Source of the DNA: Guillardia theta CCMP2712
Lineage: Eukaryota; Protista; Cryptophyta
Assembly (NCBI RefSeq): GCF_000315625.1
Contig: NW_005434617.1
Coordinates: 417,085 to 481,084, forward strand
Length of the DNA stretch: 64,000 nucleotides
Reading direction: 5' to 3'
How positions within the stretch are numbered: position 1 is the first letter of the stretch; each line of letters starts with the position of its first letter. Below, piece after piece: positions 2,118 to 58,814 of this stretch. Under the pieces are notes generated by a model. It saw nothing but the letters and a program-made list of their open reading frames with translations. It was not told the DNA's origin and did no database searches. The position numbers and the translations under genes are program-made.

Positions 2118-4370
2118 CTCAGGCTTGTCGCACGTCTCGGAGAAGTCATGTTGGTAAAGTCGTCTCGGACGTCACGAGCAAGTCAAGGTTGTTCCAGACG
2201 TCACGAGCAAGTCAAGTCAAAGTCGTCTCAGACTACATGAACAAGCCAAGGTCGACCGCGAGGACGACGTCTCGTTTGAGTGCATGCGAGGTTGATAGTC
2301 GTTGCAAGGTCAAGGCGAGACCTGTATGATAGCAGATAGATTGAAGGTCTTTGATGTCAAAGGGCTCCAATAAACGATGTGATAACACGTGATGTCTCGG
2401 CTCACATTGCCAAGCTCCAGCAGCAAGTGACCAATCTCCGTCAAAGCGTCAGCGAATCGATCACTGATTATACTCTTCGACGCCATGTTATGTTAACGAA
2501 CTTCTACTCTACAAATCTGAGGCTGTCGTATTTCAAGAGCACAATCTTCTTCAACTATTTGCCAATGGTTTTCATGACCCTGATCTCCGACTTGTCATGG
2601 TCCCCATTGCGCACATGCATCCTCCTACCGCTGCCACGATGTCACGTTTAGTACAGAAAGCTTTCGCCTTCGTCAAACCGTCTTCTTCGGTTCCTGCTCC
2701 GCAGCCTCTTGTGCCCTTCAACCCTCTCCGTCGACGCCAGGAGCTCAGCCCTCCCCAGCTCCCGCGCAGTCCTCCGGTTCTCCCCCGAATTATTTCTGCA
2801 CGTACTGCAAACGTTCTTGTCACACGTTGAAGTAAAGAAAAAGCAAGCTGATCGCAATGCTTCTTCCTCAGTATCACAGCCCAAGCAGCGCAGGAAGACG
2901 CCGCGTCAGCTTTTTCGACATGGGATGATTCTGACTGACCTCATCGTTCTTCAGCGAAGTCTTACGACAGATGGAAGTGACATGAACTCATCGACTACTC
3001 CAACTCTTTTCAAATCCTACAACACCTACCAAGTGACCAAAATCTCATCATAGCATATCTCGACGGTCTGAACGAGACGTTCAAGAATGATGCGATGTCT
3101 CACAGGCTAAACGAAATCCTGACTCAAGATTCACTCTATGACGCACAGAAGCTAAAAATCAAGAAACTGCTCAGGAGCAACAGCTGGTTGGAATCCGGCG
3201 GCGGTGGCAAAGAACCCCTACTAGCATGATGGAGCCAATCGACTTCCAAGTGATGAAGAAACACCGTGTCCGGACGGCGAGCAGAAGCTGCATACACTGT
3301 CTAGGTCAACAGAATCCTCTGAGAACAATGTACAGCTCTCGCACATGAACAGCGACGCTCAAGGGATTCTATCTCGCTGCAATTTGGACGCTGGAACATC
3401 TACCTCAGACCCTTCATCCCACTGCTGAATGATTCAGCCATGATTCATGCAGTGGAAAAAGTAGTAGACAGTTTCATTCACTCATACCCATAACATGATG
3501 CAGACTCATACAGGCAAGGCATCAAACGACCTGCGCATCCTTTCGCGCCATCAATCTCGCGGCTCTATTCTTGTGGTCTGCATTTCATCCCAACAACGTG
3601 AGCGTAGACCTCATGTAGCTGCAGGTCCACCCGTACTTTGCAAGCGCGACCACCTGGTAGTGATGATGCCTGAAGTCCACGGGGTTTGAGGCCTTGAGGC
3701 ACTTCGAGCATCCCCACGGGCGTTGCTTTGGACCTACACCAGAGATACCGGAACATGCTGAAGAAGACGTCGATGGCCTGCATCTTGACTACATCGGAAA
3801 GGCGATAATCCCTCTCGCAGTCGCTCATCACCACCTCCCTGGCATGACGTCATCCACGGATTCATTCAGCTCCCCCAAGGAGTAGCTCGCGAAGAAACCA
3901 AACCTGGGCCAGCGGACAGCAATTTCCAGCACAGCTCGGTCACCCCAGGGTTGTCACCAGGTTGTCCACGGCCTCATTCAAGTGGATCTGCAGGTTGGTG
4001 ACGGCATGGTCGATGGGCTGCGTCGTCGGTGATGACCAGGGCCCTGCAGTTGGGCACGATGTCCTGCACCCTCGGCTTGTCGACGTCACGGAGAAGTCAT
4101 GTTGGTGTGATACGCTACTGTCGTGTGGAGATCAGACTAAACAAGCAAGTCAAGTCAAGTTCGTCTCAGACTACATTAACGAGCCATAGTCGTCTCAGAC
4201 GTCACGATCAAGTCAAGTTCGTCTCAGACGTCACGATCAAGTCAAGTTCGTCTCAGACGTCACGAGCAAGTCATGGTCATCCAAGGACCAGGAGCATAAG
4301 GCCGATGTCTCGTTTGAATACCTGCGATGTTGATAGCCGTTGAATGAAGGTCAAGGCGAGACCTGTATGA
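2118..4370 (+). mobile_element. Decayed LTR-type retrotransposon remnant with gag-like fragments
   Basis: Diverged direct repeats at 2118-2329 and 4071-4370 flank broken ORFs. Frame 2987-3229 reads LIDYSNSFQILQHLPSDQNLIIAYLDGLNETFK and ~2415-2485 reads LQQQVTNLRQSVSESITDYTLR, both resembling retrotransposon gag. No clear TG..CA ends, TSD or RT motif. Confidence 0.55.
4150..4272 (+). repeat. 29-bp tandem subrepeat (GTCTCAGACGTCACGATCAAGTCAAGTTC) within the direct repeat
   Basis: Units at 4192-4220 and 4221-4249, partial at 4250-4272 and upstream. Related units at 2162-2235. Confidence 0.9.
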
Positions 4371-4540
4371 GTTAGTCATGTAGTCTTTTGATGGGATTTG
4401 AATGAAAGGAGCGAGACTGGGACACACTACTGGAGGTACGTGAGGTACGTGAGGTACTCGAGGAAGGAGACTCGTCTCTCTCCTCCTCCTCCTGCTCTCT
4501 GCGGGCGAACACCCTAGATTAGAGCAACTCCACGGGTCCC

Positions 4541-4692
4541 AAAGTTCAAAGTCAGTACGAGGACAATCAGGAGAGTCGAGGAGGCTTGACCCTGACACTG
4601 TCGCACTGGCCAAACGGCGAGAAGAGAAAAGACAGCGAGAACCAAACCCAATCCTGCCAACTGCTGTCCCCCAAACTTAACTGATACCTTCA
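4541..4692 (+). repeat. Dispersed repeat family, copy A
   Basis: 4557-4608 is identical over 52 nt to 14228-14279. The reverse complement aligns to 45882-46045, and the 5' part resembles 46378-46416. Confidence 0.9.
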
Positions 4693-5046
4693 TATACTTA
4701 ACAGCTACTAGCTAAAAGGACCTTCTCCAGGCCAGGATGGGAGGAGGGAGAAGTGAAAACAAGTAGACAGACGCTGATGGGAGAATGGACGAGGGATCAG
4801 AGCTGACAAGAGAAGGAAGACAAGACCACAGACCAGGAGTGACATGAAACATCTGTAGGTGTTGTACATGTTGACATTTGTGGAATGTCGAGAAGAGGGA
4901 TTTGTACATTAGATCATTTGTTGCATGAAGAAGATTGGGGATAGAGAAAACAACTCGAAGGTCAGGATGCTTGTAGCAATCGAGAAGCAAAGTCCTAGCC
5001 TCAATCTGACTCTCCTTGTTTCGCTCAAATACTCCTCACATCAGAC

Positions 5047-6545: not shown

Positions 6546-6599
6546 TGAGCGCCTCATCAGCCATGTTAGTAAACCGGTGACCTCAAACCATCATTATTA

Positions 6600-7260
6600 A
6601 CTAGTGAGCATTCCGTCGGTCCGATGGCCGCCGCATGGCGGCCGCCGCGGCCGCTGTCGCGGCCCGATCACCGTGCACTGGCCGGGCACTACCGTCGCCT
6701 CCGGTCACGGTAACCCCGGACCGTGGCACAGCGGCCTGGGCTAGCACGGCCGCGTCATGCCCTGCGGCCCCACGGTGACTCCGGGACCGTAGTGACAGAG
6801 TACGGCCCACGCCGGTAGGCGCTGGCCGGGCCGTCTGAGCCCCCGGGGCCGCCGCCCGCCGGGAGCGGCGCGGCTGCCCCGGCTGACTCGGGGGCCGCTC
6901 AGCGGGCTGAGGGCCGCCCTCAGTTCCGAAGTTCCGAGTGACTGATTGCCGAACCCGGAGTCGGTGGGGCTCACGATGGAGGCTGGAGTTGGCAGGCCGC
7001 TGACGGTCGGCCGGTCTCTGTCCGACCGTCACGGCGGTCCGATCTGATCTGCACTGCGGCAAGAACGCCAGTCGGCCCCACCGGGACGGCCCAGTTCGAT
7101 CGGACAGCCGGGTGACCGGGCCGCGCGATCCGGCGCCGGTCAGAGTCGAGTCCGCCGGACTCCCCGCCTCAGTCAGGCCCTGATCCGGGCCTGGCGTCGG
7201 ACTGCCAGGGTCACGGTCCGAATCACTGAAGCGGCAGACGGTCCGGGTGGCCGCAAGCCT
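6600..7260. other. GC/CpG-rich intergenic island (CCGG, GGCC, GAGTC, GTCAC words)
   Basis: Abrupt shift to very GC-rich sequence with many short palindromes. Its ORFs are R/P/A/G-rich nonsense. Confidence 0.75.
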
Positions 7261-7834
7261 GAACTTGGAAGGGTTGAATCAGTGCGGATCATGCCCGGCG
7301 ATTGCAGCTGCTGTTGTAGGCGATGAGCGTTACAATTGCGACGGTTAAAAATCCTCCGGCGGAAGCGCGTGATGGCGCCACAGGGCGAGCGATTGAAGGG
7401 GAGGAGAAGAGGGAGAAGAATGACGAAGGAGAGCGACAGGGAGACAAGGACATGAAGATGCTAGATGAGTATGACCAACTATGTAGATGACAGGACAAGT
7501 GCAGACAGTGCAGGGACGTCAGTTGTGTTGTTAGCTTGTTCCCCTAATTCCTTGTTTACAATCACCTTGTCTTGAATATTGTTGGTATTTTATGCTCTTT
7601 GTCACAACCTTCAACAAACATTTAGAAGAATGTCTTGAATGCCTCCCAACGTTTTTCAAACTGCTGCCGTTGTTTGCTCCTCGCCCCTTCTCTCGCTGAG
7701 CTGGACCCTTGCGAAGCATGTACCCCTGCTCAGTTTTCCTTGGCCATGAACACTCGACGAGCAGCTAAATGTCATGACAGGGATCGTTCACGTTGTCGGA
7801 CTGAAAGAAGAATCATCAAACACCCTCGGCATTC

Positions 7835-13900: not shown

Positions 13901-14200
13901 AGTGATATGCCTCTGAATGTTTCAACGAGCATCGTTCCTGATTCAAACCTTTGATCTAACATTGAATTGATCAACAAAAAGTTTTTGAAATCTCATTGGA
14001 GTATTTCGGGATCAACGGTGCCAAACTTGAACGATGGCCCCCTTAAAAGTATTTTTGGGAGCTCTTGGATTCCAGTACAAAGTAAAATTGATTTTTGAAG
14101 AACTTTTTCGGGCCGACCGGTGACCGGCTCGGCAGGCCCGCCGGTCACAGTTGGCCCGAGCAATGGCAACTTGCTTGAACTTTCATAGTACTCCGAGTCT

Positions 14201-14307
14201 TTACTCAAAGTTAAGTTAAAGATCAGCACGAGGACAATCAGGAGAGTCGAGGAGGCTTGACCCTGACACTGTCGCACTGAGTCAAGCCTCCTCTCCTTTA
14301 ACTTAAC
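14201..14307 (+). repeat. Dispersed repeat copy B with local fold-back
   Basis: 52-nt identity to copy A, followed by GTCAAGCCTCCTCTCCTTTAACTTAAC, the reverse complement of parts of the preceding sequence. Confidence 0.85.
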
Positions 14308-14578
14308 TCAGTAACTTCAGCCTGAGTGGCAAGTCATGACCGTGTGGCATGGCGGATCGGATGAATGCCATCCGATGATCCGATGATCCGATGATCGGCA
14401 GCCGCACTCAGTGTCGCCGGGCCGCCCGGCGACCGGACCGTTCTGAGTGACAACTTGAGCCTCGGAGGTCGTACGGCATGGCAGCGGCGCTGACCAGGTT
14501 GAAGAGACGAGTCACGCTTGCTGGTAAATCTACAGGAAAAGAAGCAAACGAGCTGAGAACTTACTGACCGTCGTGGCC

Positions 14579-33738: not shown

Positions 33739-36160
33739 ATGCTCAGCCTCCATGCTCGGAGAAGCCTCCTCTGCATCCTCCTCCTCCTCTCCTCTTTCCT
33801 CAATCTCTGCACTCCTTTCGCGCCAGCGGCTCTCCACATTCAGCGGAGCCTCCCTTCCTGTTGGCGTCCGGCATGGCCCTCCAGGTGCCACGACTCTGAG
33901 TTGGCAACGGTGACACTGAGGCCCTTGTAGTCTCAGCAGGTCATGCCGGCAAACAAGCACATGGAAATGCGCCAACGAGGTCTCAATCCCATGGCCCGAC
34001 CTTGCCGCTGATCCCTTCTCCGCCAGGACGTGAGAGGTTTCGAGGAGGAGGAGGACGAGAGGTAAATCTCCCTTCCCCCTCCCTGCTCTTCTCAGCTTCT
34101 TCTGCAGCCTGCGGAAGAGCACGCGGAGGAAGATGCGCGACAAGTCCAGCACAAGGTCACTCGCAGGGAAGAAGCTGAAGGTGAGGGAGGAGAGCAGGAG
34201 CTCGTGAAACGTTTTCAGCTGATACCCTACAAGCGGACGCGGGCGCGGGGGACCTCAACGGAGTTCCTGGTGGAGGAGCTCACGACAGATGATGGGCTCT
34301 TGCTCTCTGGAGGGCTGCTGCTAGAGGTACTGACCCCTCAGGAGCAGGAGGAGCAGGAGGGGGAGGAGCAGCAGGAGGAGGAGCAGGAGGAGGAAGTGGT
34401 GGTGGTCTGACTGTTTGCTCAACCCCAAGGCTCGCTCCAACTGGGTCCGAGACCTGATGTCTACCGGTCGATCGCTCCTCCTCCGCCGGATCGCCGACCG
34501 TCTTGGCTTCATTGGCCTCTGGTCCGTCTTCGTCTCCCTCCTCTTCGCCTTCTCCCCCGACGACTGGCACGTGCACGAGGTCCTCAAGGTGCCCGAGTGG
34601 CCGCACGAGCTCGTCGGTGGTTTCCTGTCCATCCTCCTCGTGTTCAGGACAGATCAGGCGTACCAGAGGTTCTGGGAAGGAAGGGAGCGATGGGCTGACG
34701 TAGCAGGTCATGGATCTTTCTCTTTTCCTCTCCCCTCCTCTTGCTCCTCCTCCTCCAACACCACCACCATCACCAACACCTCCTCCTCCTCCTCCTCTCC
34801 TCGATCCTTCTTTCTCATCCTGTCGTGCTGCTCGCCCTCTTGCTCGTCATGCTGTCCTTCCGTCCTGAGCATGCGCCTGTTCTTCTTCTCTTCCTCCTCC
34901 CCTCACAGCACTGTTGGCTGAAGTCTCATCGCTGGCAGCCCATCTCCGTACGATGACTCGCATCACGGTGACGGCGGTGGAGCCGCGATCTCAGGACGCG
35001 ATCCTCTCCCACCTCTGCGCCTTCCCCATCACGCTGAAGCAGCACCTGAGGGGAGAGAGGAGTGGCTCTGAACTAGAGCCCATTTTCGACGCGTTCAATC
35101 CCAACGAGGTCGAGGACGGGGACGAGGACGGGTCCCACAACATTCAGAACATCCTCGGAGCCAACAACATGCCCCTGACCCTGTTGACGTCTCTCTCTTC
35201 ACAGGTCCGCCCCCCTCCTTCCCTTACTCCCTCCTCCCTCCATTACCCCTTCCTCCTCCTCCCCTCCTCCTCCCCCCGCCCCCCCCTCCTCCTCCTCCTC
35301 CTCCTCCNNNNNNNNNNNNNNNNNNNNNNNNNNNNNNNNNNNNNNNNNNNNNNNNNNNNNNNNNNNNNNNNNNNNNNNNNNNNNNNNNNNNNNNNNNNNN
35401 NNNNNNNTCCCGGGCAGCGATGCCAAGAGGACACACCGCCTCTCCCCTGCATCACCTCCTCTTTCGGATACACGTCATCATCGCCGCCGACACCGGACGA
35501 CTCCTCAGCGACATCTTCATGCCGCCAGCTCTACACTACCTGTCTTCTTCTTCATCGTCCTCCTCCTCCCCCGCCCCCTGCCCCCTGCCCCCCCCTTTCA
35601 CTGCCGTCTCCTCAGCTTCATCTGCTCTCCATTTCATTCCTCTCTTCCTCTTATCCTCTTCTTCCCTTCGATTCTCCCCCTCCTTGCACTTCCCTCTCCT
35701 CTCTCTTCGCTCCTCCGACAACAAGCTCAGGTCCTGCCCCTCGATCGATACTGCTGGGGAATACAGCGAGACGTTATCCAACAGGTCAGAAGGAGGAGGA
35801 AGAGGAAGAGAGAGGAGAAGGAGGAGGAGGGGAGAAGAGAAGGAAGGATGAACAGGAGAGGAGGAGGAGGAGGAAGTGGTGGTGGTGCATCCGGGACAAG
35901 GACGAGGAGGAAGCTCTTTGACGATACGAGCAGGCGGTGTTCATGGCGGAGGGATCCAAGAGAAGAGTGAGTGGAGGAAGAGCAGAGGAGTGGGAAACAT
36001 GGATGGGCAGCGGGGAGGGAGGTGAAGGTAGCGGGGACGTTGGAGCAAGAAGGAAGGAGGGGAAGGGGAAGGGGAAGGGGAGAAGGTAAGAGCTGACGAT
36101 TCGGCAGCGGTATATGTCCATCTCTTCGCAGATCAAAGTGTCTTCACCATTCCGATAGAG
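33739..36160 (+). CDS. UPF0187/bestrophin-like anion channel, probably plastid-targeted (spans an assembly gap; 3' end uncertain)
   Basis: PHELVGGFLSILLVFRTDQAYQRFWEGRERW and AFPITLKQHLRG are family hallmarks. An N-terminal signal peptide is followed by FAP. Confidence 0.88.
35308..35407. other. Assembly gap (100 N)
   Basis: Run of N flanked by CCT repeats. Confidence 1.
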
Positions 36161-41797: not shown

Positions 41798-43485
41798 ACA
41801 GGAGCAGGAGCAGGCGCGAGGAGCAGGCGCAGGCGCAGGAGCANNNNNNNNNNNNNNNNNNNNNNNNNNNNNNNNNNNNNNNNNNNNNNNNNNNNNNNNN
41901 NNNNNNNNNNNNNNNNNNNNNNNNNNNNNNNNNNNNNNNNNNNCCCCCCCCCCCCGCCATCGCTAACTTCCTCCAACTCCTCTTACTTCTGCAAGTCTCC
42001 CTCCTCCTCTCATACTCTCTCTCCCTCGTTTCTCCTCCTCACGATCCCTGTCCTCTTCGTCTTCCTCTTCCTCTTCCTCTTCCTCTTCCTCTTCCTCTTC
42101 CTCTTCCTCTTCCTCTTCCTCTTCCTCTTCCTCTTCCCGTTCTTCTGGCACTCATTTGCATGTTGTATTCACGTCTTTCTCCTTTTCTCTCCTTCCCTTG
42201 GTTCCTTACCTTCTCTCTCTCCTTCTCCCCTCCCTCCGTCCCTTCCGTCCTTTCTTCCTTCCTTTCTCCTCTTTTTTCCCCCTCACTGCTCCATTCCCAC
42301 CTTCAGGGTTGTCCCTTCCATCGCATTCAGACGGGTGAACAATGTTTTTGTTCGGGAGGAGGAGAAGGTTAAGGACGTTCTGCAGGATTCGTGTGCCAAG
42401 GAGGAGACGTGACGCGATTCGATGGTGAGGGGAGGAAGGGGAGTAAGGAAGAGGAGAAGAAAGGAGGTGGAACGCATGTGAGCACGAGCTCGCAACCAAG
42501 GAAACTCGAAGGAGGGGAGGAGGGAGGGGCAGGGAAGGAGCGGATTGGTCTGGGAGGAAGGAGGAAAGAGGAAAGATTGTCTTGTAGGAGGAGGGTGAGA
42601 AGACGGCAGGTTCCGGAGGGGAATCAATCTACGGCAAGAAGTTCAACGACGAGAAGGACGGGATGAAGCTCAAGCACGACAGGGCAGGTGGACAAGCTTG
42701 AGAGGAGGGGAAGAGGAGGAAGAGGAGAGGAGAGCAGAGGAGGGGAGGGAAGAGGAGAGGAGAGGAGCAGGAGGAAGAGAGGTTCAGGAGTGATTGGAGG
42801 ATGAAGGTGTTGTGGCGATGGCAAACAGCGGAAAGAATAGCAACTCATCGCAATTCTACATCACATTGGATAAGGCTCCTCAGGTCCTCCCCTCCCTCCC
42901 TCCATCCATCCATCCATCCATCCATCCATCCCTTCCTCTCTCCCTCCCTGTCTCCCCATCCCCAAATCCCCTGCTGTCTTTCACTTGCCCTATTCTGTCT
43001 TGTCGTTCTGCTTGACCCTCATCATTGACATGTCCGGCAGTGTGACGGGAAGTATGTCGTCTTCGGCAGAGTTCGGGTCACTTGCTCTCTCCCCATCCTT
43101 TTCTTCTGCTCCCATGCCCCTTGCCCCAGTCATCCTACTCTCCTCTCGGTCCTCCCCTTTCCTTTCTGTCCTGATACTCCTCCCCTCTTTCTCCTCCCCC
43201 CTCAGTTCCCCTCTGTCCTCTTCCCAACTCCTACCTTTCCTCTCTCCTCCCTTCTCTCTTCTCCCTCCTCCTTCTCTCTCTCCTCCCGTCTACCTTTCCC
43301 CCCGATCCTCCCCATCCTCATCATCGTAGCAGGATGATTGCCTGCATGTTCTTGAAGCCATCGCTGCATGCAGCAGCCCCGATGGCACGCCAAAGGTTAT
43401 TCAGCAACCCTGCACGCGCCTCGTTTCCTCCTCCTCTCCTCCTCTCATTTTCGTCTCCCATGTTTTTCACCGTCGTATTGTCAGT

Positions 43486-43895: not shown

Positions 43896-44909
43896 TTACA
43901 TGGCAAACCTTTGGAGGACCGTCGCTTCTGCTCCCTCCTCCTCCTCCTCCTCCTCCTCCCTCCTCACCCTCCTCCTCCTCCCTCACCCTCCTCCTCCTCC
44001 CTCCTCACGACTCCCTCCCACTCTCCCCCTATCCTTCGTACCGCTGAGCTCCTCCACCTTGGGTGCTCGCATCGACATCTCGTACAGGAAGAACTTGAGC
44101 TCGAGATACTTGCGACTCCCCGTCCCCACCTCCTGGATCGAGTAGCGGCCCTGCAGCCAGGCGGGAGGCAGCTCAAGGGGCTCGAGGGGAGGAGGACGAG
44201 GGTTGCCGTCGGGGTCGATGTACCAGAATACCCGATCATGCTGGAGGCAGTTGTTGTCCGCGCAGTTGACCACCCCCCGCAGGTGCTTGCAAGGGGAGAA
44301 GTACCCCACCTCCAGCTGTAGCTGCCGGTACCAGGAGTACATCCTCGCTACCCGCGGGATCGGAACCTCGATGCATCCCGTGCTCGCCCTCTTCGCTGCC
44401 TTCCTGAGCTCGAGCCGGTAGATCGCTCCTGTCCCACACGAGCTCACGATGGGATCGGGAGCGATGAGGAAGGGAAACATCCCCTCCTCCTCGTTCCTGC
44501 AGCACCAGGAAGGATCCTTGCAGAGGATCCCCAGAAAGGGATTTGCATCCTTGGAAGGCTCGACGACGGCATGCTCCGGCAGCTGTCGCTTCAGCCATGG
44601 GACAAGGAGCGGCTGTGCAAACTTGTGGAAAAAGGAATTGACCTGGCAGAGGAGGTCGAACCGAACGTCTTCGTCACTGTAGGACACGAAGACGTACTGC
44701 AGAAATATTTCCATAGCAGCTTCCTTGGTTGATCTTGACTTGTCCTTTCCTTGAATGCAACGCGAAGCCATGGAGACTTCTTGTCCTGCCCCTTGCGAGA
44801 CTTTGTTTGTTTTCCCTCCGCCGCGAACAGCACAGCTCGCAAACTTGCAGGAATCCATGCGTGAGCTAGAGGACCTGCAGCACTGAGACATCACTGACGT
44901 GCTATCCAT
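43896..44909 (-). CDS. Hypothetical protein with possible F-box-like N-terminal segment
   Basis: A 308-aa frame with globular composition. IFLQYVF..LLCQVNSFFHKFA weakly resembles an F-box. The start and last exon are uncertain. Confidence 0.55.
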
Positions 44910-45189: not shown

Positions 45190-46560
45190 AGGAGCTAGGA
45201 AGGTGCTATCTGGTCTTAAAAATGCTCAGTATTCCCCTAGGTTTCCTAAGACCCCTATGGCATCTTCTAAGTGATTCTGAGTAGGACCCTAGGACCTCAA
45301 ACTGTACCTTAGCCTCCCTCTCAGTACCCCTCTTCTTACCTCCTTCTACCCACCCATTTCGATCACCACCACCCCTCTTCACGAAGAGAAGTAGAAGGAC
45401 CCTACCCCTGTGCGTCCTTCCCAACCACCGATGTCGACAGATTGTGATCCGCCCGCTGAGACCACCCGGTCAAGGAGTACCCCTACCCACCATCATCATG
45501 GATTCACGCGTGATTTGAATGGAATTTCGAGGGTCCTCGACACCAAAGGATGACCCCCTGTACACCCCCACCCCCAATGGTATGCGACTACCCCTGTAAG
45601 ATGAGCCCCCCCGGTTCGCTGCACTGCTGCCACCTGAGTCTCATAGTTCCAGCTCCAACAATCATAACTGCCGATACCCCACCACCTCGTAAATGGCGAG
45701 TCAGTGATTTTAACACGTCTCAGGTGATCCGACTTGCAAACGCATCCCGGAGTCCGGTCCAGGATCTTTCGTCAGCTCAAGGCCGGGCCTCCCTCAGTGT
45801 CCTACGCTGCCATCATCGCGGGTGCATTCCGGTATCATGCGGCGTCTCATTCCTTCGGCGGCGGCCACAGCGCGTAGTAATTGAAGGTATCAAATAAGTT
45901 TGGGAGACAGCAGTCGGCAAGATTGGGTTTGGTTCTCGCTGTCTTTTAAAGAGTCCGAGTCTTCTGCGGCCGTTTGGCCTGCCACAGTGTGCGATAGTGT
46001 CAGGCCCCGGCGAGGGTCAAGCCCGGGCGGCCTCCTGACTCTCCTCAGTGTACTCAGTCACTGCGGCTGAGTGACGCGTGACTCCGAGTCGGCATCCGAG
46101 GCCGGGCCGCCCGGTACTTCATACGGGCGGCCGCGTGGCATCATATGATTGTGACCGTCACGGCGTACAAGTCTGACTTGAACAAACTTGCTTGTACTCC
46201 GTCACGGGGCACTGTGGCAGGCGCTGAAGCCTGGCGGCCAGCGCCCGGGCTCCGACGGCCGGGCGGCGCGCCGGGTCCCGGACTCGGACTGAGTCGGGGA
46301 GTCCGACTTGGAGTCCGAGCCGACGGCGAGCCTCGGAGTGTTTCACCGGCCCCCGGCTCCGGGGGGGCCCTTTACTGTTACTCAAAGTTAAGCCTAAATC
46401 AGTACGAGGGCAATCAATCAAGTCACTTCAAAAGATGTGGGTACCCCCACCTCTTTTTTCACCCACCATACTACCCCCTCAGCATATAGCTCCAAGGTCC
46501 GACTGGGGTGAAGGCGGAGGGTCGACAGGGTGGTGGTAGAGGGCAGGGGTGGTCGATGAG
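45190..46560. promoter_or_regulatory. Composite island: TACCCC arms around a CCGG/GAGTC GC core with dispersed-repeat fragments
   Basis: TACCCC words at 45190-45700 and 46435-46560, GC core at 45740-46370, repeat copy C (-) at 45882-46045 and copy D (+) at 46378-46416. Confidence 0.55.
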
Positions 46561-46989: not shown

Positions 46990-47619
46990 ATGTTAGGGTT
47001 GCGATCGATGCAGTCTATGGCATACCATCCGGACAGTAGAGCTCAAGTCTCGTTGTCTAGTCTAACCAAGATGTCCATGTTTCAAGGGAGATCAAGCTCT
47101 CCTGTGAAGGGATCCATATCGACCAATTTTTGTGAGAAGTGCAAGACCAAGACGATGGGCAAGCTTCAATTCCCATGCGGACGGGTGGTGATTCTTTGCG
47201 AGAAATGCGCATTGAGCTTCTTTGATGTTTTGGTTTTGAAATCGTCTGCAAAGAAGGTGGTTTGGGACACGTCGGGTGGCTCGCAAAGGAGCTCGATGAA
47301 AGTGACGGAGGAGGGGGGTGCCGCAGCTGCAGGTCAAGCGAGCTTCAATTGGCTGCGACAGAAACAGCAGGAGGGAGAGATTAAGCTGCCGGACAACCTG
47401 AAAAGCTCGTACCAGAAGAACCTCTCCTCCACCATCTATCCCTCCAAGGGGAGAAGGCAAGCGACTCTCGTCTGCAGCATCGGTGTGACCATAGCGACTT
47501 GCTGCAGTCAACTCGCAGGCATCGGCAGACGAGACGGGCCCCAAGGCTCGAGAGATACTCTCATTCCAGCTCACCTGGCTCGAGGTTTGCCCGGGACTAG
47601 ATTGATTCCCACCATCTGA
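46990..47619 (+). CDS. Hypothetical protein with a possible 4-Cys zinc site
   Basis: 209-aa ORF containing CEKC...C...CEKC. Confidence 0.45.
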   Translation: MLGLRSMQSMAYHPDSRAQVSLSSLTKMSMFQGRSSSPVKGSISTNFCEKCKTKTMGKLQFPCGRVVILCEKCALSFFDVLVLKSSAKKVVWDTSGGSQRSSMKVTEEGGAAAAGQASFNWLRQKQQEGEIKLPDNLKSSYQKNLSSTIYPSKGRRQATLVCSIGVTIATCCSQLAGIGRRDGPQGSRDTLIPAHLARGLPGTRLIPTI

Positions 47620-51723: not shown

Positions 51724-54700
51724 ATGCAGATGCAAACGTCAGGGCCTCCTCACCTTGCCACGGAGTACATCAACGTCTCCAGGGAGGGGGTTCCCCAGGG
51801 GGACACACCTACAGGAGGGTTCTCTCCCAGCTACAACAGCATCTCTCCCAGGGGAGTATACGACTCCGGTCGCCGATACCAGGGTGACGTCAGGGGGAAG
51901 AGAAACTCCCTGGAAACAGCGCAAACGCGCAGGAGCAGCATGCTGAGGGTGAAGGATCACGACCTCGGGCAGGCTGGGGTTGGACTTGTCTTTGTCAAAG
52001 ACGATACAAACGACCATCCCGTGGTTGCAGCTGTGACGGCTGATGGGTCTGCCTTCCGGGACGGACAGATCCAAGTAGGAGATAGAATCACCAGGGTTCA
52101 AGGACAGCCCACTTTCGGAGTCAGCACGGAGGGGCTTGCGGAGAGGATTCTAGGTCCTTACGGATCTTCGGTGAGCCTGACCTTCATACGACAAGGAGAC
52201 GACAGAGAGTTTGTAGTCAGCCTCATCCGAGGATCTCCGATCTACTGGCACATGACAGATCAAATCCAAATCCTGCAGAAGACCGTGGAAACGCTGGATA
52301 TGGAGAAGATAAAGATTCGATCCGATTTGGAACAGCTTCTGACCAATGAAAGAAAGCAGCATTACTCTGAGATGAGCGAGAAAACCAAGAGGCATGATGC
52401 CTTCGTGTCAGAAATGAGTGCTCACCACCAGCAGTACGTTGAATCTTTGTCGAGGAAACATGAAGCCGATATGCAGCAGACCACAGACCGTTTTATGCAC
52501 CAGATAGAAACGTCCAAGAAGGATCATATGCAACAGATGACTGAGGCAGCTAAAAACTTTCAAGCAACGATCGATGAGTACAAGCGACAGTATAGCGATC
52601 TCATCGCTGAGCAAAAGAAGCAACACTCTGAAACCATTGCGTCGTATGAGAAAATGCAAATTCACGCAATGAACGAAAAGGAGGTGCAAATCGCTCAAAT
52701 TCACAAGAATTTCAACGAAAAGCTTGAAACTTATAATTTGGAGCTTCGGACAAAATCAGAAGTGCTCGAAACTAAAGAAATTGAGAACGGCCGACTCAAG
52801 AGTGATGTGCAAACCTTGAAGGGGAAATGCACATCTCTGGAAGGAGAGCTAAAAGCAGCCGCAAAAGACATGAAGGTATCTTGTCTTTTTCCCTGCTCGA
52901 AGCTTTAACGCCCTCGCCTTCAGGAGCTCAAAGATTCATTCTCAGCTCTCAAGACTGAGAACCAGTCGACTATCCAGCAATTGAGACAGGAGCTTGAAGC
53001 GTACATGCGCCAGGTCTCGGATCTCAACGCCAGCCTCTCCAAGCAAGCCCAGGAGCTCCGTATTGCACACAAGGAGAAGAGTGAGCTCGTCTCCTCCCTC
53101 AACTCCGTTCGCGCCGAGGCCGATCGGCTGCAGGCAGAGCAGAAGGTCTTGGACCCATGCTCGCTCCTCTCCGGCCTGTGACGAGACTTGGCAGGCGCTG
53201 GAGGGTAAGCTCGAGAAGCTGGGCTCAGACAGCAACCAGAAGATACAAGCTGTCGAGGATCGGGCCAAGCAGGTCCAGCAGAAGCTTGAGCAGCAGCTCA
53301 AGGCCGCCAAGGACGAGCTGGAGAGCACAAAGCACGCGCTCGGAGAGCAGAGGGCTCTTAGCGAGGAGCTGAAGATCAAGGGGGAGCGGCTGACCCAAGA
53401 CAAGCAGGTAAGAGATCGAGTCTGACCGGGAAGGGAGGGCATGGGCCGGAGAGGAGGGAGGGAGTAATGCACATCACAGGACCTGCGAAGCAAGCTCGAG
53501 AGTCAGGAGGCAGAGCACAGCACACGGATGAAGAAGCTGCAGGAGGAGCTTGAAGCGTACATGCGCCAGGTCTCGGATCTCAACGCCAGCCTCTCCAAGC
53601 AAGCCCAGGAGCTCCGTATTCTTACATTGAGCCCCGGTTTCGTCTCCTCCCTCAACTCCGTTCGCGCCGAGGCCGATCGGCTGCAGGCAGAGCAGAAGGT
53701 CTTGGACCCATGCTCGCTCCTCTCCGGCCTGTGACGAGACTTGGCAGGCGCTGGAGGGTAAGCTCGAGAAGCTGGGCTCAGACAGCAACCAGAAGATACA
53801 AGCTGTCGAGGATCGGGCCAAGCAGGTCCAGCAGAAGCTTGAGCAGCAGCTCAAGGCCGCCAAGGACGAGCTGGAGAGCACAAAGCACGCGCTCGGAGAG
53901 CAGAGGGCTCTTAGCGAGGAGCTGAAGAACAAGGGGGAGCGGCTGACCCAAGACAAGCAGGTAAGAGATCGAGTCTGACCGGGAAGGGAGGGCATGGGCC
54001 GGAGAGGAGGGAGGGAGTAATGCACATCACAGGACCTGCGAAGCAAGCTCGAGAGTCAGGAGGCAGAGCACAGCACACGGATGAAGAAGCTGCAGGAGGA
54101 GCTTGAAGCGTACATGCGCCAGGTCTCGGATCTCAACGCCAGCCTCTCCAAGCAAGCCCAGGAGCTCCGTATTGCACACAAGGAGAAGAGTGAGCTCGTC
54201 TCCTCCCTCCACTCCGTTCGCGCCGAGGCCGATCGGCTGCAGGCAGAGCAGAAGGTCTTGGACCCATGCTCGCTCCTCTCCGGCCTGTGACGAGACTTGG
54301 CAGGCGCTGGAGGGTAAGCTCGAGAAGCTGGGCTCAGACAGCAACCAGAAGATACAAGCTGTCGAGGATCGGGCCAAGCAGGTCCAGCAGAAGCTTGAGC
54401 AGCAGCTCAAGGCCGCCAAGGACGAGCTGGAGAGCACAAAGCACGCGCTCGGAGAGCAGAGGGCTCTTAGCGAGGAGCTGAAGAACAAGGGGGAGCGGCT
54501 GACCCAAGACAAGCAGGTAAGAGATCGAGTCTGACCGGGAAGGGAGGGCATGGGCCGGAGAGGAGGGAGGGAGTAATGCACATCACAGGACCTGCGAAGC
54601 AAGCTCGAGAGTCAGGAGGCAGAGCACAGCACACGGATGAAGAAGCTGCAGGAGGAGATGGATGAGTTGAGCAAACAATTGAAGGTGTTGCAAATCCTTT

Positions 54701-57538: not shown

Positions 57539-58814
57539 CTGTAGACCTCTGCGAGATCCTTCAAGCATCGTAACAAGATCTCGCGCATGTCTTGGCTCTC
57601 CCCTGCTCACAGAAAGTCAAGATTTTCCCCATCCCTCTGCTCCTCTCTGTTCTTCTCAACCTTGATCTTCTTGTTTCATCCACTTCTGCAGCCTCGAAAC
57701 TGCTGAGAGTCAGTACACCACGACCACAACCACCGCCATGTCCTCCTCCTCCCCTTCCACACCTTTGACATCTCCTTCCCCCCCCCCCCCACGCAAATGG
57801 AATGAGCATGGCAACTGGAGGAAGATAGGAGAGAGGAACTTTCTTAGCATGGACATATGTTCACATTACAAAAAACTGGGGTGGGTGTGCCTGCTATAGG
57901 CAGGAGAGGGGGGGCAAGAGGGCACGTATAATGAAGGAGGGGGGGAGANNNNNNNNNNNNNNNNNNNNNNNNNNNNNNNNNNNNNNNNNNNNNNNNNNNN
58001 NNNNNNNNNNNNNNNNNNNNNNNNNNNNNNNNNNNNNNNNNNNNNNNNCGCTCTGCTCTGCTCTGCTCTGCTCTGCTCTGCTCTGCTCTGCTCTGCTCTG
58101 CTCTGCTCTGCGCTCCTCTCCTCTCCTCTCCTCTCCTCTCCTCTCCTCTGCTCTCCTCTCCTCTCCTTTCTCCTTCCCTCTCCCTCGCTTTCGTCTTCCT
58201 ACTCGCGTCTGGTTTCGCCGTCTCCCGACTCTGAGGCGGAGGTGTGAGATATAAGGAGAAGCGAGGGAGGGGAGGGAGAGCAAGGCAGGCAGAGCATGAT
58301 CGACAGTAGGAGGAGGGGCAGGAGCAGGAGGGGCAGGAGCAGGAGGGGCAGGGGCAGGAGGAGCAGGAGCAGGAGGGGCAGGAGCAGGAGGGGCAGGAGC
58401 AGGAGGGGCAGGAGAGTCGAGCAAGAACGGATATCAATGATGACTAAGAGGACGGGGAGCAGAGGGCCACACGGCGAAGCAGGTGAAGCAGAGCAGCGAG
58501 ACGTCAGAACAAGAAGAGGAGAATGAAGAGGAGGAGGAGGAGGAGGAGGTTCAAGTGCAAGAAGGGGAAAACGAACACGAGTATCTGGGGAAGACCGGAG
58601 CTTACCTGACCTTACATGATAGAACCATGAAGATCCGTCGGGCGCTTGCAGCGTCGCTGCTTTCCATCGTTGTAAACTCGGGGCTGGTCGCCTCCTTCGC
58701 TTCATCTCCCGCTCTCGCTAGATCGATGAGCGTCAAGGCTGTGCATGCTTGCAGAGCTTCTTCTTTCCACGGCATGGTGAGGACACGAGGACCAGGACTG
58801 TGCGTGGTCATCAA
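56233..58814 (-). CDS. Multi-exon hypothetical protein with polyQ tract (spans gap)
   Basis: Helical-looking frames 58602-58814, 57310-57588, 56480-57300 and 56233-56451 with plausible splice sites. Confidence 0.5.
57949..58048. other. Assembly gap (100 N)
   Basis: Run of N next to (CTCTG)n. Confidence 1.

Follow-up and report, generated by a model that had tools for sequence, protein, structure and literature searches.

Short template switches appear in a linear alignment as clusters of indels and substitutions, and they create inverted repeats and the potential to form hairpins (PMC5453318, PMC8794818). High-confidence calls of such events have been limited to copied fragments of 14 nt or more (PMC5453318). 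Inserts of the polymerase-theta/SD-MMEJ type are shorter than 25 nt and reproduce nearby sequence exactly or almost so; they use 1-5 nt of microhomology, they can be direct or snap-back copies, and their synthesis is error-prone (PMC5068794, PMC5728401, PMC4912351). The template of polymerase-theta inserts lies mostly within about 20 bp, and the inserts are accompanied by deletions (PMC5068794). A third group of possible relatives comprises the footprints of transposons and the P/N nucleotides of V(D)J-type joining, where palindromic additions are made at a break and the filler is GC-rich.

Here we describe a copy of a MITE-like repeat in Guillardia theta CCMP2712 (copy C in Table 1), the second part of which is broken by five short GC-rich insertions (I1 to I5) beside a GC island. 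The locus resembles the short template-switch (four-point) model in its reverse-complement matches to the island, which measure 13, 10, 10, and 10 nt (a reverse-only control gave one 8-mer). However, the longest of them, at 13 nt, falls below the 14-nt cut-off, and lengths of 10-13 nt lie near the noise-prone range (PMC5453318). Copy C also departs from that model in that its changes are near-pure insertions rather than replacements, number five in 100 nt, are strongly GC-rich, and sit beside a special class of island. With the inserts of polymerase theta and SD-MMEJ it shares short length, identity to nearby sequence, microhomology at the junctions, and error (I4 matches its putative template at 7 of 8 positions), but the templates for I1, I3, and I5 are 73-330 nt away and only one ancestral base has been lost; a literature search returned no statement on a polymerase theta gene in Guillardia theta. 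Palindromic additions and GC-rich filler are common to copy C and to the footprints and P/N nucleotides; unlike these, copy C has flank duplications that are not constant in length and palindromes that are odd (with a single central base) instead of even, and we know of no candidate element. Our preferred reading, to which we assign a probability of roughly 55%, is that short insertions made by template switching or end joining have spread words of the island into copy C.

The window analysed here is a stretch of 64,000 nt from the forward strand of contig NW_005434617.1 (positions 417,085-481,084, assembly GCF_000315625.1). Table 1 gives the positions of the repeat copies, the insertions, and the GC-rich features of the locus.

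Table 1. Repeat copies, insertions in copy C and GC-rich features at the locus, in window coordinates (I1 to I5 are defined against the family consensus)
Feature	Position	Strand	Description
Copy A	4542-4692	-	Outside any island; colinear with the family consensus
Copy B	14198-14317	-	Shorter variant; island-type sequence on either side
Copy C	45876-46066	+	MITE-like repeat; 5' 72 nt intact, five insertions in the 3' part
Copy D	46378-46416	-	Inverted 3'-terminal fragment of the same repeat; 3' end directly at the edge of the main island
I1	45948-45959	+	AAAGAGTCCGAG, replaces one C; no flank duplication
I2	45966-45968	+	GCG for C, net +2
I3	45982-45989	+	CCACAGTG, 8 nt, 2-nt ambiguity (TG)
I4	46005-46015	+	CCCCGGCGAGG, 11 nt, ends in a copy of the preceding AGG
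I5	46024-46032	+	CGGGCGGCC, 9 nt, ends in a copy of the preceding GCC
GC island patch	46070-46135		GC 0.65-0.80; candidate templates 46105-46114 (-) and 46124-46132 (+)
Main GC island	46200-46372		GC up to 0.90; odd palindromes with a central C or G are dense
Candidate templates in the main island	46210-46222, 46242-46251, 46281-46290		All reverse complement

The repeat was recognized within the window by blastn at 4541-4698 (-), 14213-14279 (-), and 45876-45947 (+), corresponding to copies A, B, and C, with identities to copy A of 94% for copy B and 90% over 72 nt for copy C. Copy D was found with the extended consensus as the query (90% over 40 nt, E value of 9e-6). The core of the repeat spans about 151 nt; including the ends, the length is about 180 nt. 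The consensus of the loose ends of aligned reads lengthens the family slightly on both sides and indicates that the main family ends contain GTTAAG in inverted orientation, with some uncertainty as to the exact termini. Perfect 12-nt terminal inverted repeats are present in copy B (14296-14307 and 14210-14221), and its flanks show an imperfect ACTC-type similarity only as far as a target duplication is concerned, the ends of the element not being defined to the base. The repeat is thus short, non-coding, present in high copy number, and furnished with terminal inverted repeats, and the family behaves like a MITE, i.e., a short non-autonomous DNA transposon. Neither the repeat family nor the GC islands were described in any paper found in our literature search, and a 23-mer of the repeat had no match in a metagenome scan.

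Low-depth RNA reads cover both strands of the repeat (4542-4692), whereas the flanks of copy A have none; some copies elsewhere are therefore transcribed. GC islands account for just 2-4% or so of the window, yet three of its four repeat copies are situated inside or up against one (14080-14470 and 45720-46430). There are two ways to read this: the element targets islands or promoters, or it is the islands that form around the element.

The 3' part of copy C was compared with copies A and B, which are identical to each other across the 52 nt that hold three of the insertion sites. The reading made from the sequence alone had taken the differences as insertions in copy C on the strength of that agreement. 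With three sequences and all the indels on one unrooted branch, parsimony cannot separate a gain in C from a loss in A and B, and the flank duplications are uninformative on polarity because microhomology-mediated deletion gives the same picture. We therefore rely on public reads (one DNA contig set, two raw ChIP DNA sets, and one RNA set) aligned to copy A with its flanks (4300-4950) at 80% likeness. Raw-read depth, with both directions summed, was about 2000-2300 over 4542-4692 and about 8 in the flanks; in the two ChIP DNA runs, the repeat stood at about 270-300 times the flank level, from which we estimate roughly 250-300 copies of the family. Depth was even over the sites that correspond to the insertions in C, no indel was present in at least 10% of the reads (the threshold applied) inside 4542-4692, and internal loose ends amounted to 3-6 reads of about 2000 per position (<1%), bearing in mind that reads of 38 nt do not span long insertions and that a subfamily making up less than a few percent would go undetected. 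As the family is colinear with copy A, the extra bases in C are true insertions; they are derived, and the consensus of a few hundred copies does not have them, as the sequence-only reading had proposed from the two copies. This few-hundred-copy family provides a trustworthy "before" sequence and, with it, a base-by-base record of how island-type DNA was added to ordinary DNA.

The reads also give the majority base where copy A itself has a private (minority) one, at 4551, 4607, and 4659, with 4649 about evenly divided. At 4607, 88% of the reads differ from both A and B. When the majority base at this position is used, two of the segments that had been counted as separate, TGCCAC and TG, merge into the single 8-nt insertion I3.

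The first half of copy C is an ordinary member of the family. It carries the majority family bases, and over 45882-45947 it differs from copy A by five substitutions in 66 nt with no indel, in agreement with what had been read from the sequence, and from the family consensus by four substitutions, also with no indel. The overall divergence of copy C from the consensus is about 6-9%. Beyond this half, from 45948 to 46045, the blocks that match A are still colinear (alignment score of 68.5 for the second half, with a mean of 19 and a maximum of 35 among shuffles) but are broken by the extra segments. The inserted letters sum to 43 and are 77% GC, compared to 51% for the core of the element. Five insertions and a single 1-nt deletion, TCCT(C)GACTC, fall within about 57 consensus positions, versus none in the 72 adjacent positions. 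The other copies look different, since the indels in A, B, and D are only AT-rich or of the slippage type: A has just an AT-rich 4-nt insertion and a slippage-type 5-nt deletion, and D, in which we read no GC-rich insertion, has one of 6 nt in which a C is followed by a repeat of the AGTAA just before it.

The duplications at the flanks of the insertions measure 0, 2, 3, and 3 nt. The 3-nt copies that close I4 and I5 are as first noted. In each of I3, I4, and I5, what lies between the duplicated bases of the target begins with C and ends with G. Staggered breaks had been suggested, but target duplication is not a consistent signature here, and microhomology-primed templated synthesis explains the flank duplications equally well, which leaves the staggered breaks unsupported in the form first proposed.

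The inserted letters match the local island. We compared the 98 nt that bear the insertions (45948-46045) with the adjacent island (46070-46372) and found an exact reverse-complement match of 13 nt (45977-45989, including I3, with 46210-46222) and three of 10 nt, namely, 46023-46032 (I5) with 46105-46114, 46020-46029 (I5) with 46242-46251, and 45952-45961 (I1, word AGTCCGAGTC) with 46281-46290, plus three direct 9-mers. Each long match consists of inserted letters together with 2-5 ancestral bases at one end, the outcome expected if microhomology had primed the synthesis. These matches would look alike whether the island was copied into C or C into the island. As had been recognized, the inserted words are GC-rich island vocabulary. 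The I1 word GAGTCCGA(G) is almost confined to this locus within the window, while the I5 word recurs in several islands, which means that a local source for I5 is not required. For I4 no long match was obtained; its first 8 nt agree at 7 of 8 positions with the sequence after a near-repeat, GTCAAG, located 17 nt downstream. Part of I5 falls in this stretch, and judging from these letters I4 seems to have been copied from its neighbour later and in direct orientation.

Dinucleotide-shuffled versions of the island gave a mean of 0.13 matches of at least 10 nt and never three or more (0 of 500 shuffles), and a 13-mer match arose in 0.8% of the island shuffles. Because the islands share a vocabulary, real islands were added as controls: matches of at least 9 nt occur at 23 per kb locally versus 2.5 per kb in other islands with the vocabulary. 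None of 204 other 303-nt tiles of the window exceeds two matches of at least 10 nt, and the two tiles with two such matches are copies A and B. Reverse-only and complement-only controls yielded one 8-mer each, and the insertion-free consensus had no match of at least 9 nt with the island.

A repeat copy hidden in inverted orientation in the island, which would have made the inverted matches a matter of homology, was also sought and rejected: on the plus strand 132 of 300 shuffles aligned to the consensus as well as the island did, and the minus strand was marginal (17 of 300). The island lies between divergent ORFs, one of 308 aa ending at 44909 (-) and one of 209 aa starting at 46990 (+), and would be of the promoter type, judging only by this geometry. 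No Pfam match was obtained for four ORFs, including these two and the ORFs overlapping the repeat, and an exact-protein look-up of the 308-aa ORF returned no record.

At four of the insertions (I1, I2, I3, and I5) a palindrome spans the junction with ancestral sequence or lies next to it. I1 and its flank form TCTTT-T-AAAGA, where AAAGA repeats the adjacent TCTTT in inverted form; I2 creates CGGCCG; I3 and its ancestral flank form the odd palindrome CACA-G-TGTG; and the palindrome of I5 is GCCCGGGC. Odd palindromes with arms of at least 4 nt and a central C or G are also abundant in the islands, with 12 in 46070-46372 (1.3 expected), 9 in the flanks of copy B (0.6 expected), and 10 in the large island at 6595-7261 (3.5 expected). 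Even palindromes were not enriched in the islands, and two control regions were flat. Because the ancestral state at I3 is known, one of these odd palindromes is seen to have been made by an insertion. The fold of 45940-46300 taken as single-stranded DNA is better than that of any of 100 shuffles (z = -5.2), with the I3 pairing present in the centroid structure, a result that shows the density of palindromes and not a function. The island matches and the palindromes at the flanks point to errors of repair or replication and not to coding or satellite DNA.

A related pattern is the exact 11-mer composed of a triplet, C, the inverted triplet, G, and the triplet again. The window holds 11 of these, 8 without the tandem repeat, where about 1 is expected per bracket pair, and all 8 are in GC-rich islands (45745, 46156, 46328, 14457, 6924, 7051, 33291, and 424). 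None of I1 to I5 fits the exact pattern, although I5 does with one extra G. For the more general form target-C-middle-G-target, the islands show only weak enrichment with 3-nt middles, and with middles of 4-6 nt none that clearly exceeds that of other bracket pairs. We therefore regard the C...G bracket as a lead rather than a result.

On the preferred reading, the events at this locus could have run as follows. An ordinary member of the family, the future copy C, would have landed in a GC-island zone between the divergent ORFs, and its 3' half would then have gained at least five short GC-rich insertions, most likely one at a time. At a break or a stalled fork, a 3' end would prime on a few bases of microhomology, copy 5-10 nt from a template nearby, and rejoin. 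The template would be the adjacent island, mostly as its reverse complement, or the immediately adjacent flank, and each event would add island words and palindromes, so that island-type sequence would spread into neighbouring DNA. The island thus seems to be growing into the element through local copy-and-paste errors of repair. The break, the template-switch steps, the enzyme that would carry them out, and any extension to whole islands are parts that we infer.

Neutral decay of an old copy would explain the same stretch as an accumulation of unrelated indels, GC-rich by chance or retained because promoter motifs, GC boxes for example, are under selection. At 6-9% divergence copy C is not young, the C...G bracket shows no clear enrichment in islands for middles of 4-6 nt, and the locus has GGGCGG-type words, which we take to be possible binding sites. 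Against this, the indels are crowded into the ~57 consensus positions and spare the 72 next to them, the inserted letters are far richer in GC than the element, and the excess of local matches survives the shuffle, other-island, and reverse-only controls; we consider neutral decay unlikely.

Repeated insertion and excision of DNA transposons at a hotspot, leaving target duplications together with terminal or hairpin-derived palindromic bases, would account for the 3-nt duplications of I4 and I5, the 2 nt of I3, and the palindromes with a single central base, which resemble the products of hairpin-type excision chemistry. This chemistry is that of hAT-type transposition. The position of three of the four window copies at islands would fit as well, if islands attract mobile elements. 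Yet the duplications vary in length, the segments between them share no terminal motif beyond the initial C and the final G, neither I3 nor the 8-nt event at 46156 is a duplication of an 8-nt target, and matches of 10-13 nt to the neighbouring island are not predicted. An origin of the insertions as excision footprints, one of the options first put forward, finds no specific support in these data, and we judge this explanation quite unlikely.

An element with 8-bp target duplications was considered separately, as several of the insertions are 8 nt long, and was discarded because the inserted 8-mers are unlike the adjacent 8-mers.

The segments could also have arisen elsewhere, in a rare subfamily from which copy C descends or in a copy that converted it. 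A few contigs of other copies do have GC-rich inserts of 18-36 nt in the same internal region, and a subfamily of low frequency or with long insertions is what 38-nt reads would miss. Such an origin is nonetheless highly improbable, given that internal loose ends make up less than 1% of the depth, that the inserted letters match the island beside C and nothing in the family, and that the first half of C has the majority bases. An artefact of assembly or sequencing in a GC- and palindrome-rich stretch, in a window with assembly gaps elsewhere (runs of N at 35308-35407, 41844-41943, and 57949-58048), deserves next to no credence, since contigs from the DNA runs of three studies contain 44-78% of the sampled 31-mers of 45500-46500 and the pattern is structured and unlike random error.

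The reading in which short template-switch or end-joining insertions carry island words into copy C applies to one copy. Only one of the three island-side copies is riddled, and the broader proposal of the sequence-only reading, that the islands as a whole are scars, goes beyond this, as B and D touch islands and have no GC-rich insertions; that whole islands are built in this way is unproven. Sharing of 9-mers was no higher within islands than between them, so if local copying builds islands, the older copies must have decayed. As a tentative and rather doubtful generalization, GC islands might propagate themselves, with repair at break or fork-stalling hotspots in palindrome-rich promoter DNA adding a C, copying nearby sequence, often inverted, and progressively rewriting the neighbours, mobile elements included, into island; their origin would then be mutational and not a matter of selection on base composition. 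Were the process genome-wide, it would explain the origin of the palindrome-built GC islands of this alga and document, in nature, a repair pathway biased toward insertions.

Other copies of the family, as seen in contigs, have internal deletions with one breakpoint in 4571-4603 (coordinates of A), as well as the GC-rich inserts mentioned above in the same stretch (those of 35-36 nt at 4585-4593), one of them with a 7-nt duplication. The element may have a fragile site of its own, perhaps the odd palindrome GACA-G-TGTC. Given these rearrangements, the clustering of the insertions in copy C may partly reflect such a site, although the content of the inserts would not.

Downstream of copy C, the segment 46146-46197 (+) resembles the tail of the repeat once an exact 8-nt insertion of the 11-mer pattern type, at 46156, is removed. 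By score it comes 28th among 6335 tiles, some 13 of those above it are true copies, and a standard local alignment with the 3' tail of the repeat was not significant. Its identification as the displaced 3' tail of C is only suggestive; if it is correct, copy C would enclose about 100 nt of island-type DNA (46046-46145).

GC-rich palindromic insertions were absent from the other repeats of the window (52988-54657; 276-398 versus 1058-1181; and 2122-2329 versus 4074-4370). The window also contains a tandem triplication of 557 nt, with units 97-99.6% identical, in which the middle unit alone differs by one small complex patch of several indels and substitutions within 25 nt (53065-53090 versus 53621-53640 and 54174-54200). 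The patch looks like a single replacement event.

Three further sequences were observed near the repeat copies. The AT-richer gap between the island patches contains a 13-nt odd palindrome centred on T, with arms of 6 nt (46168-46180), and a 10-nt even palindrome, ATCATATGAT (46140-46149), and beside copy B the island-type sequence includes a short tandem repeat of the 8-nt unit ATCCGATG (14370-14396).
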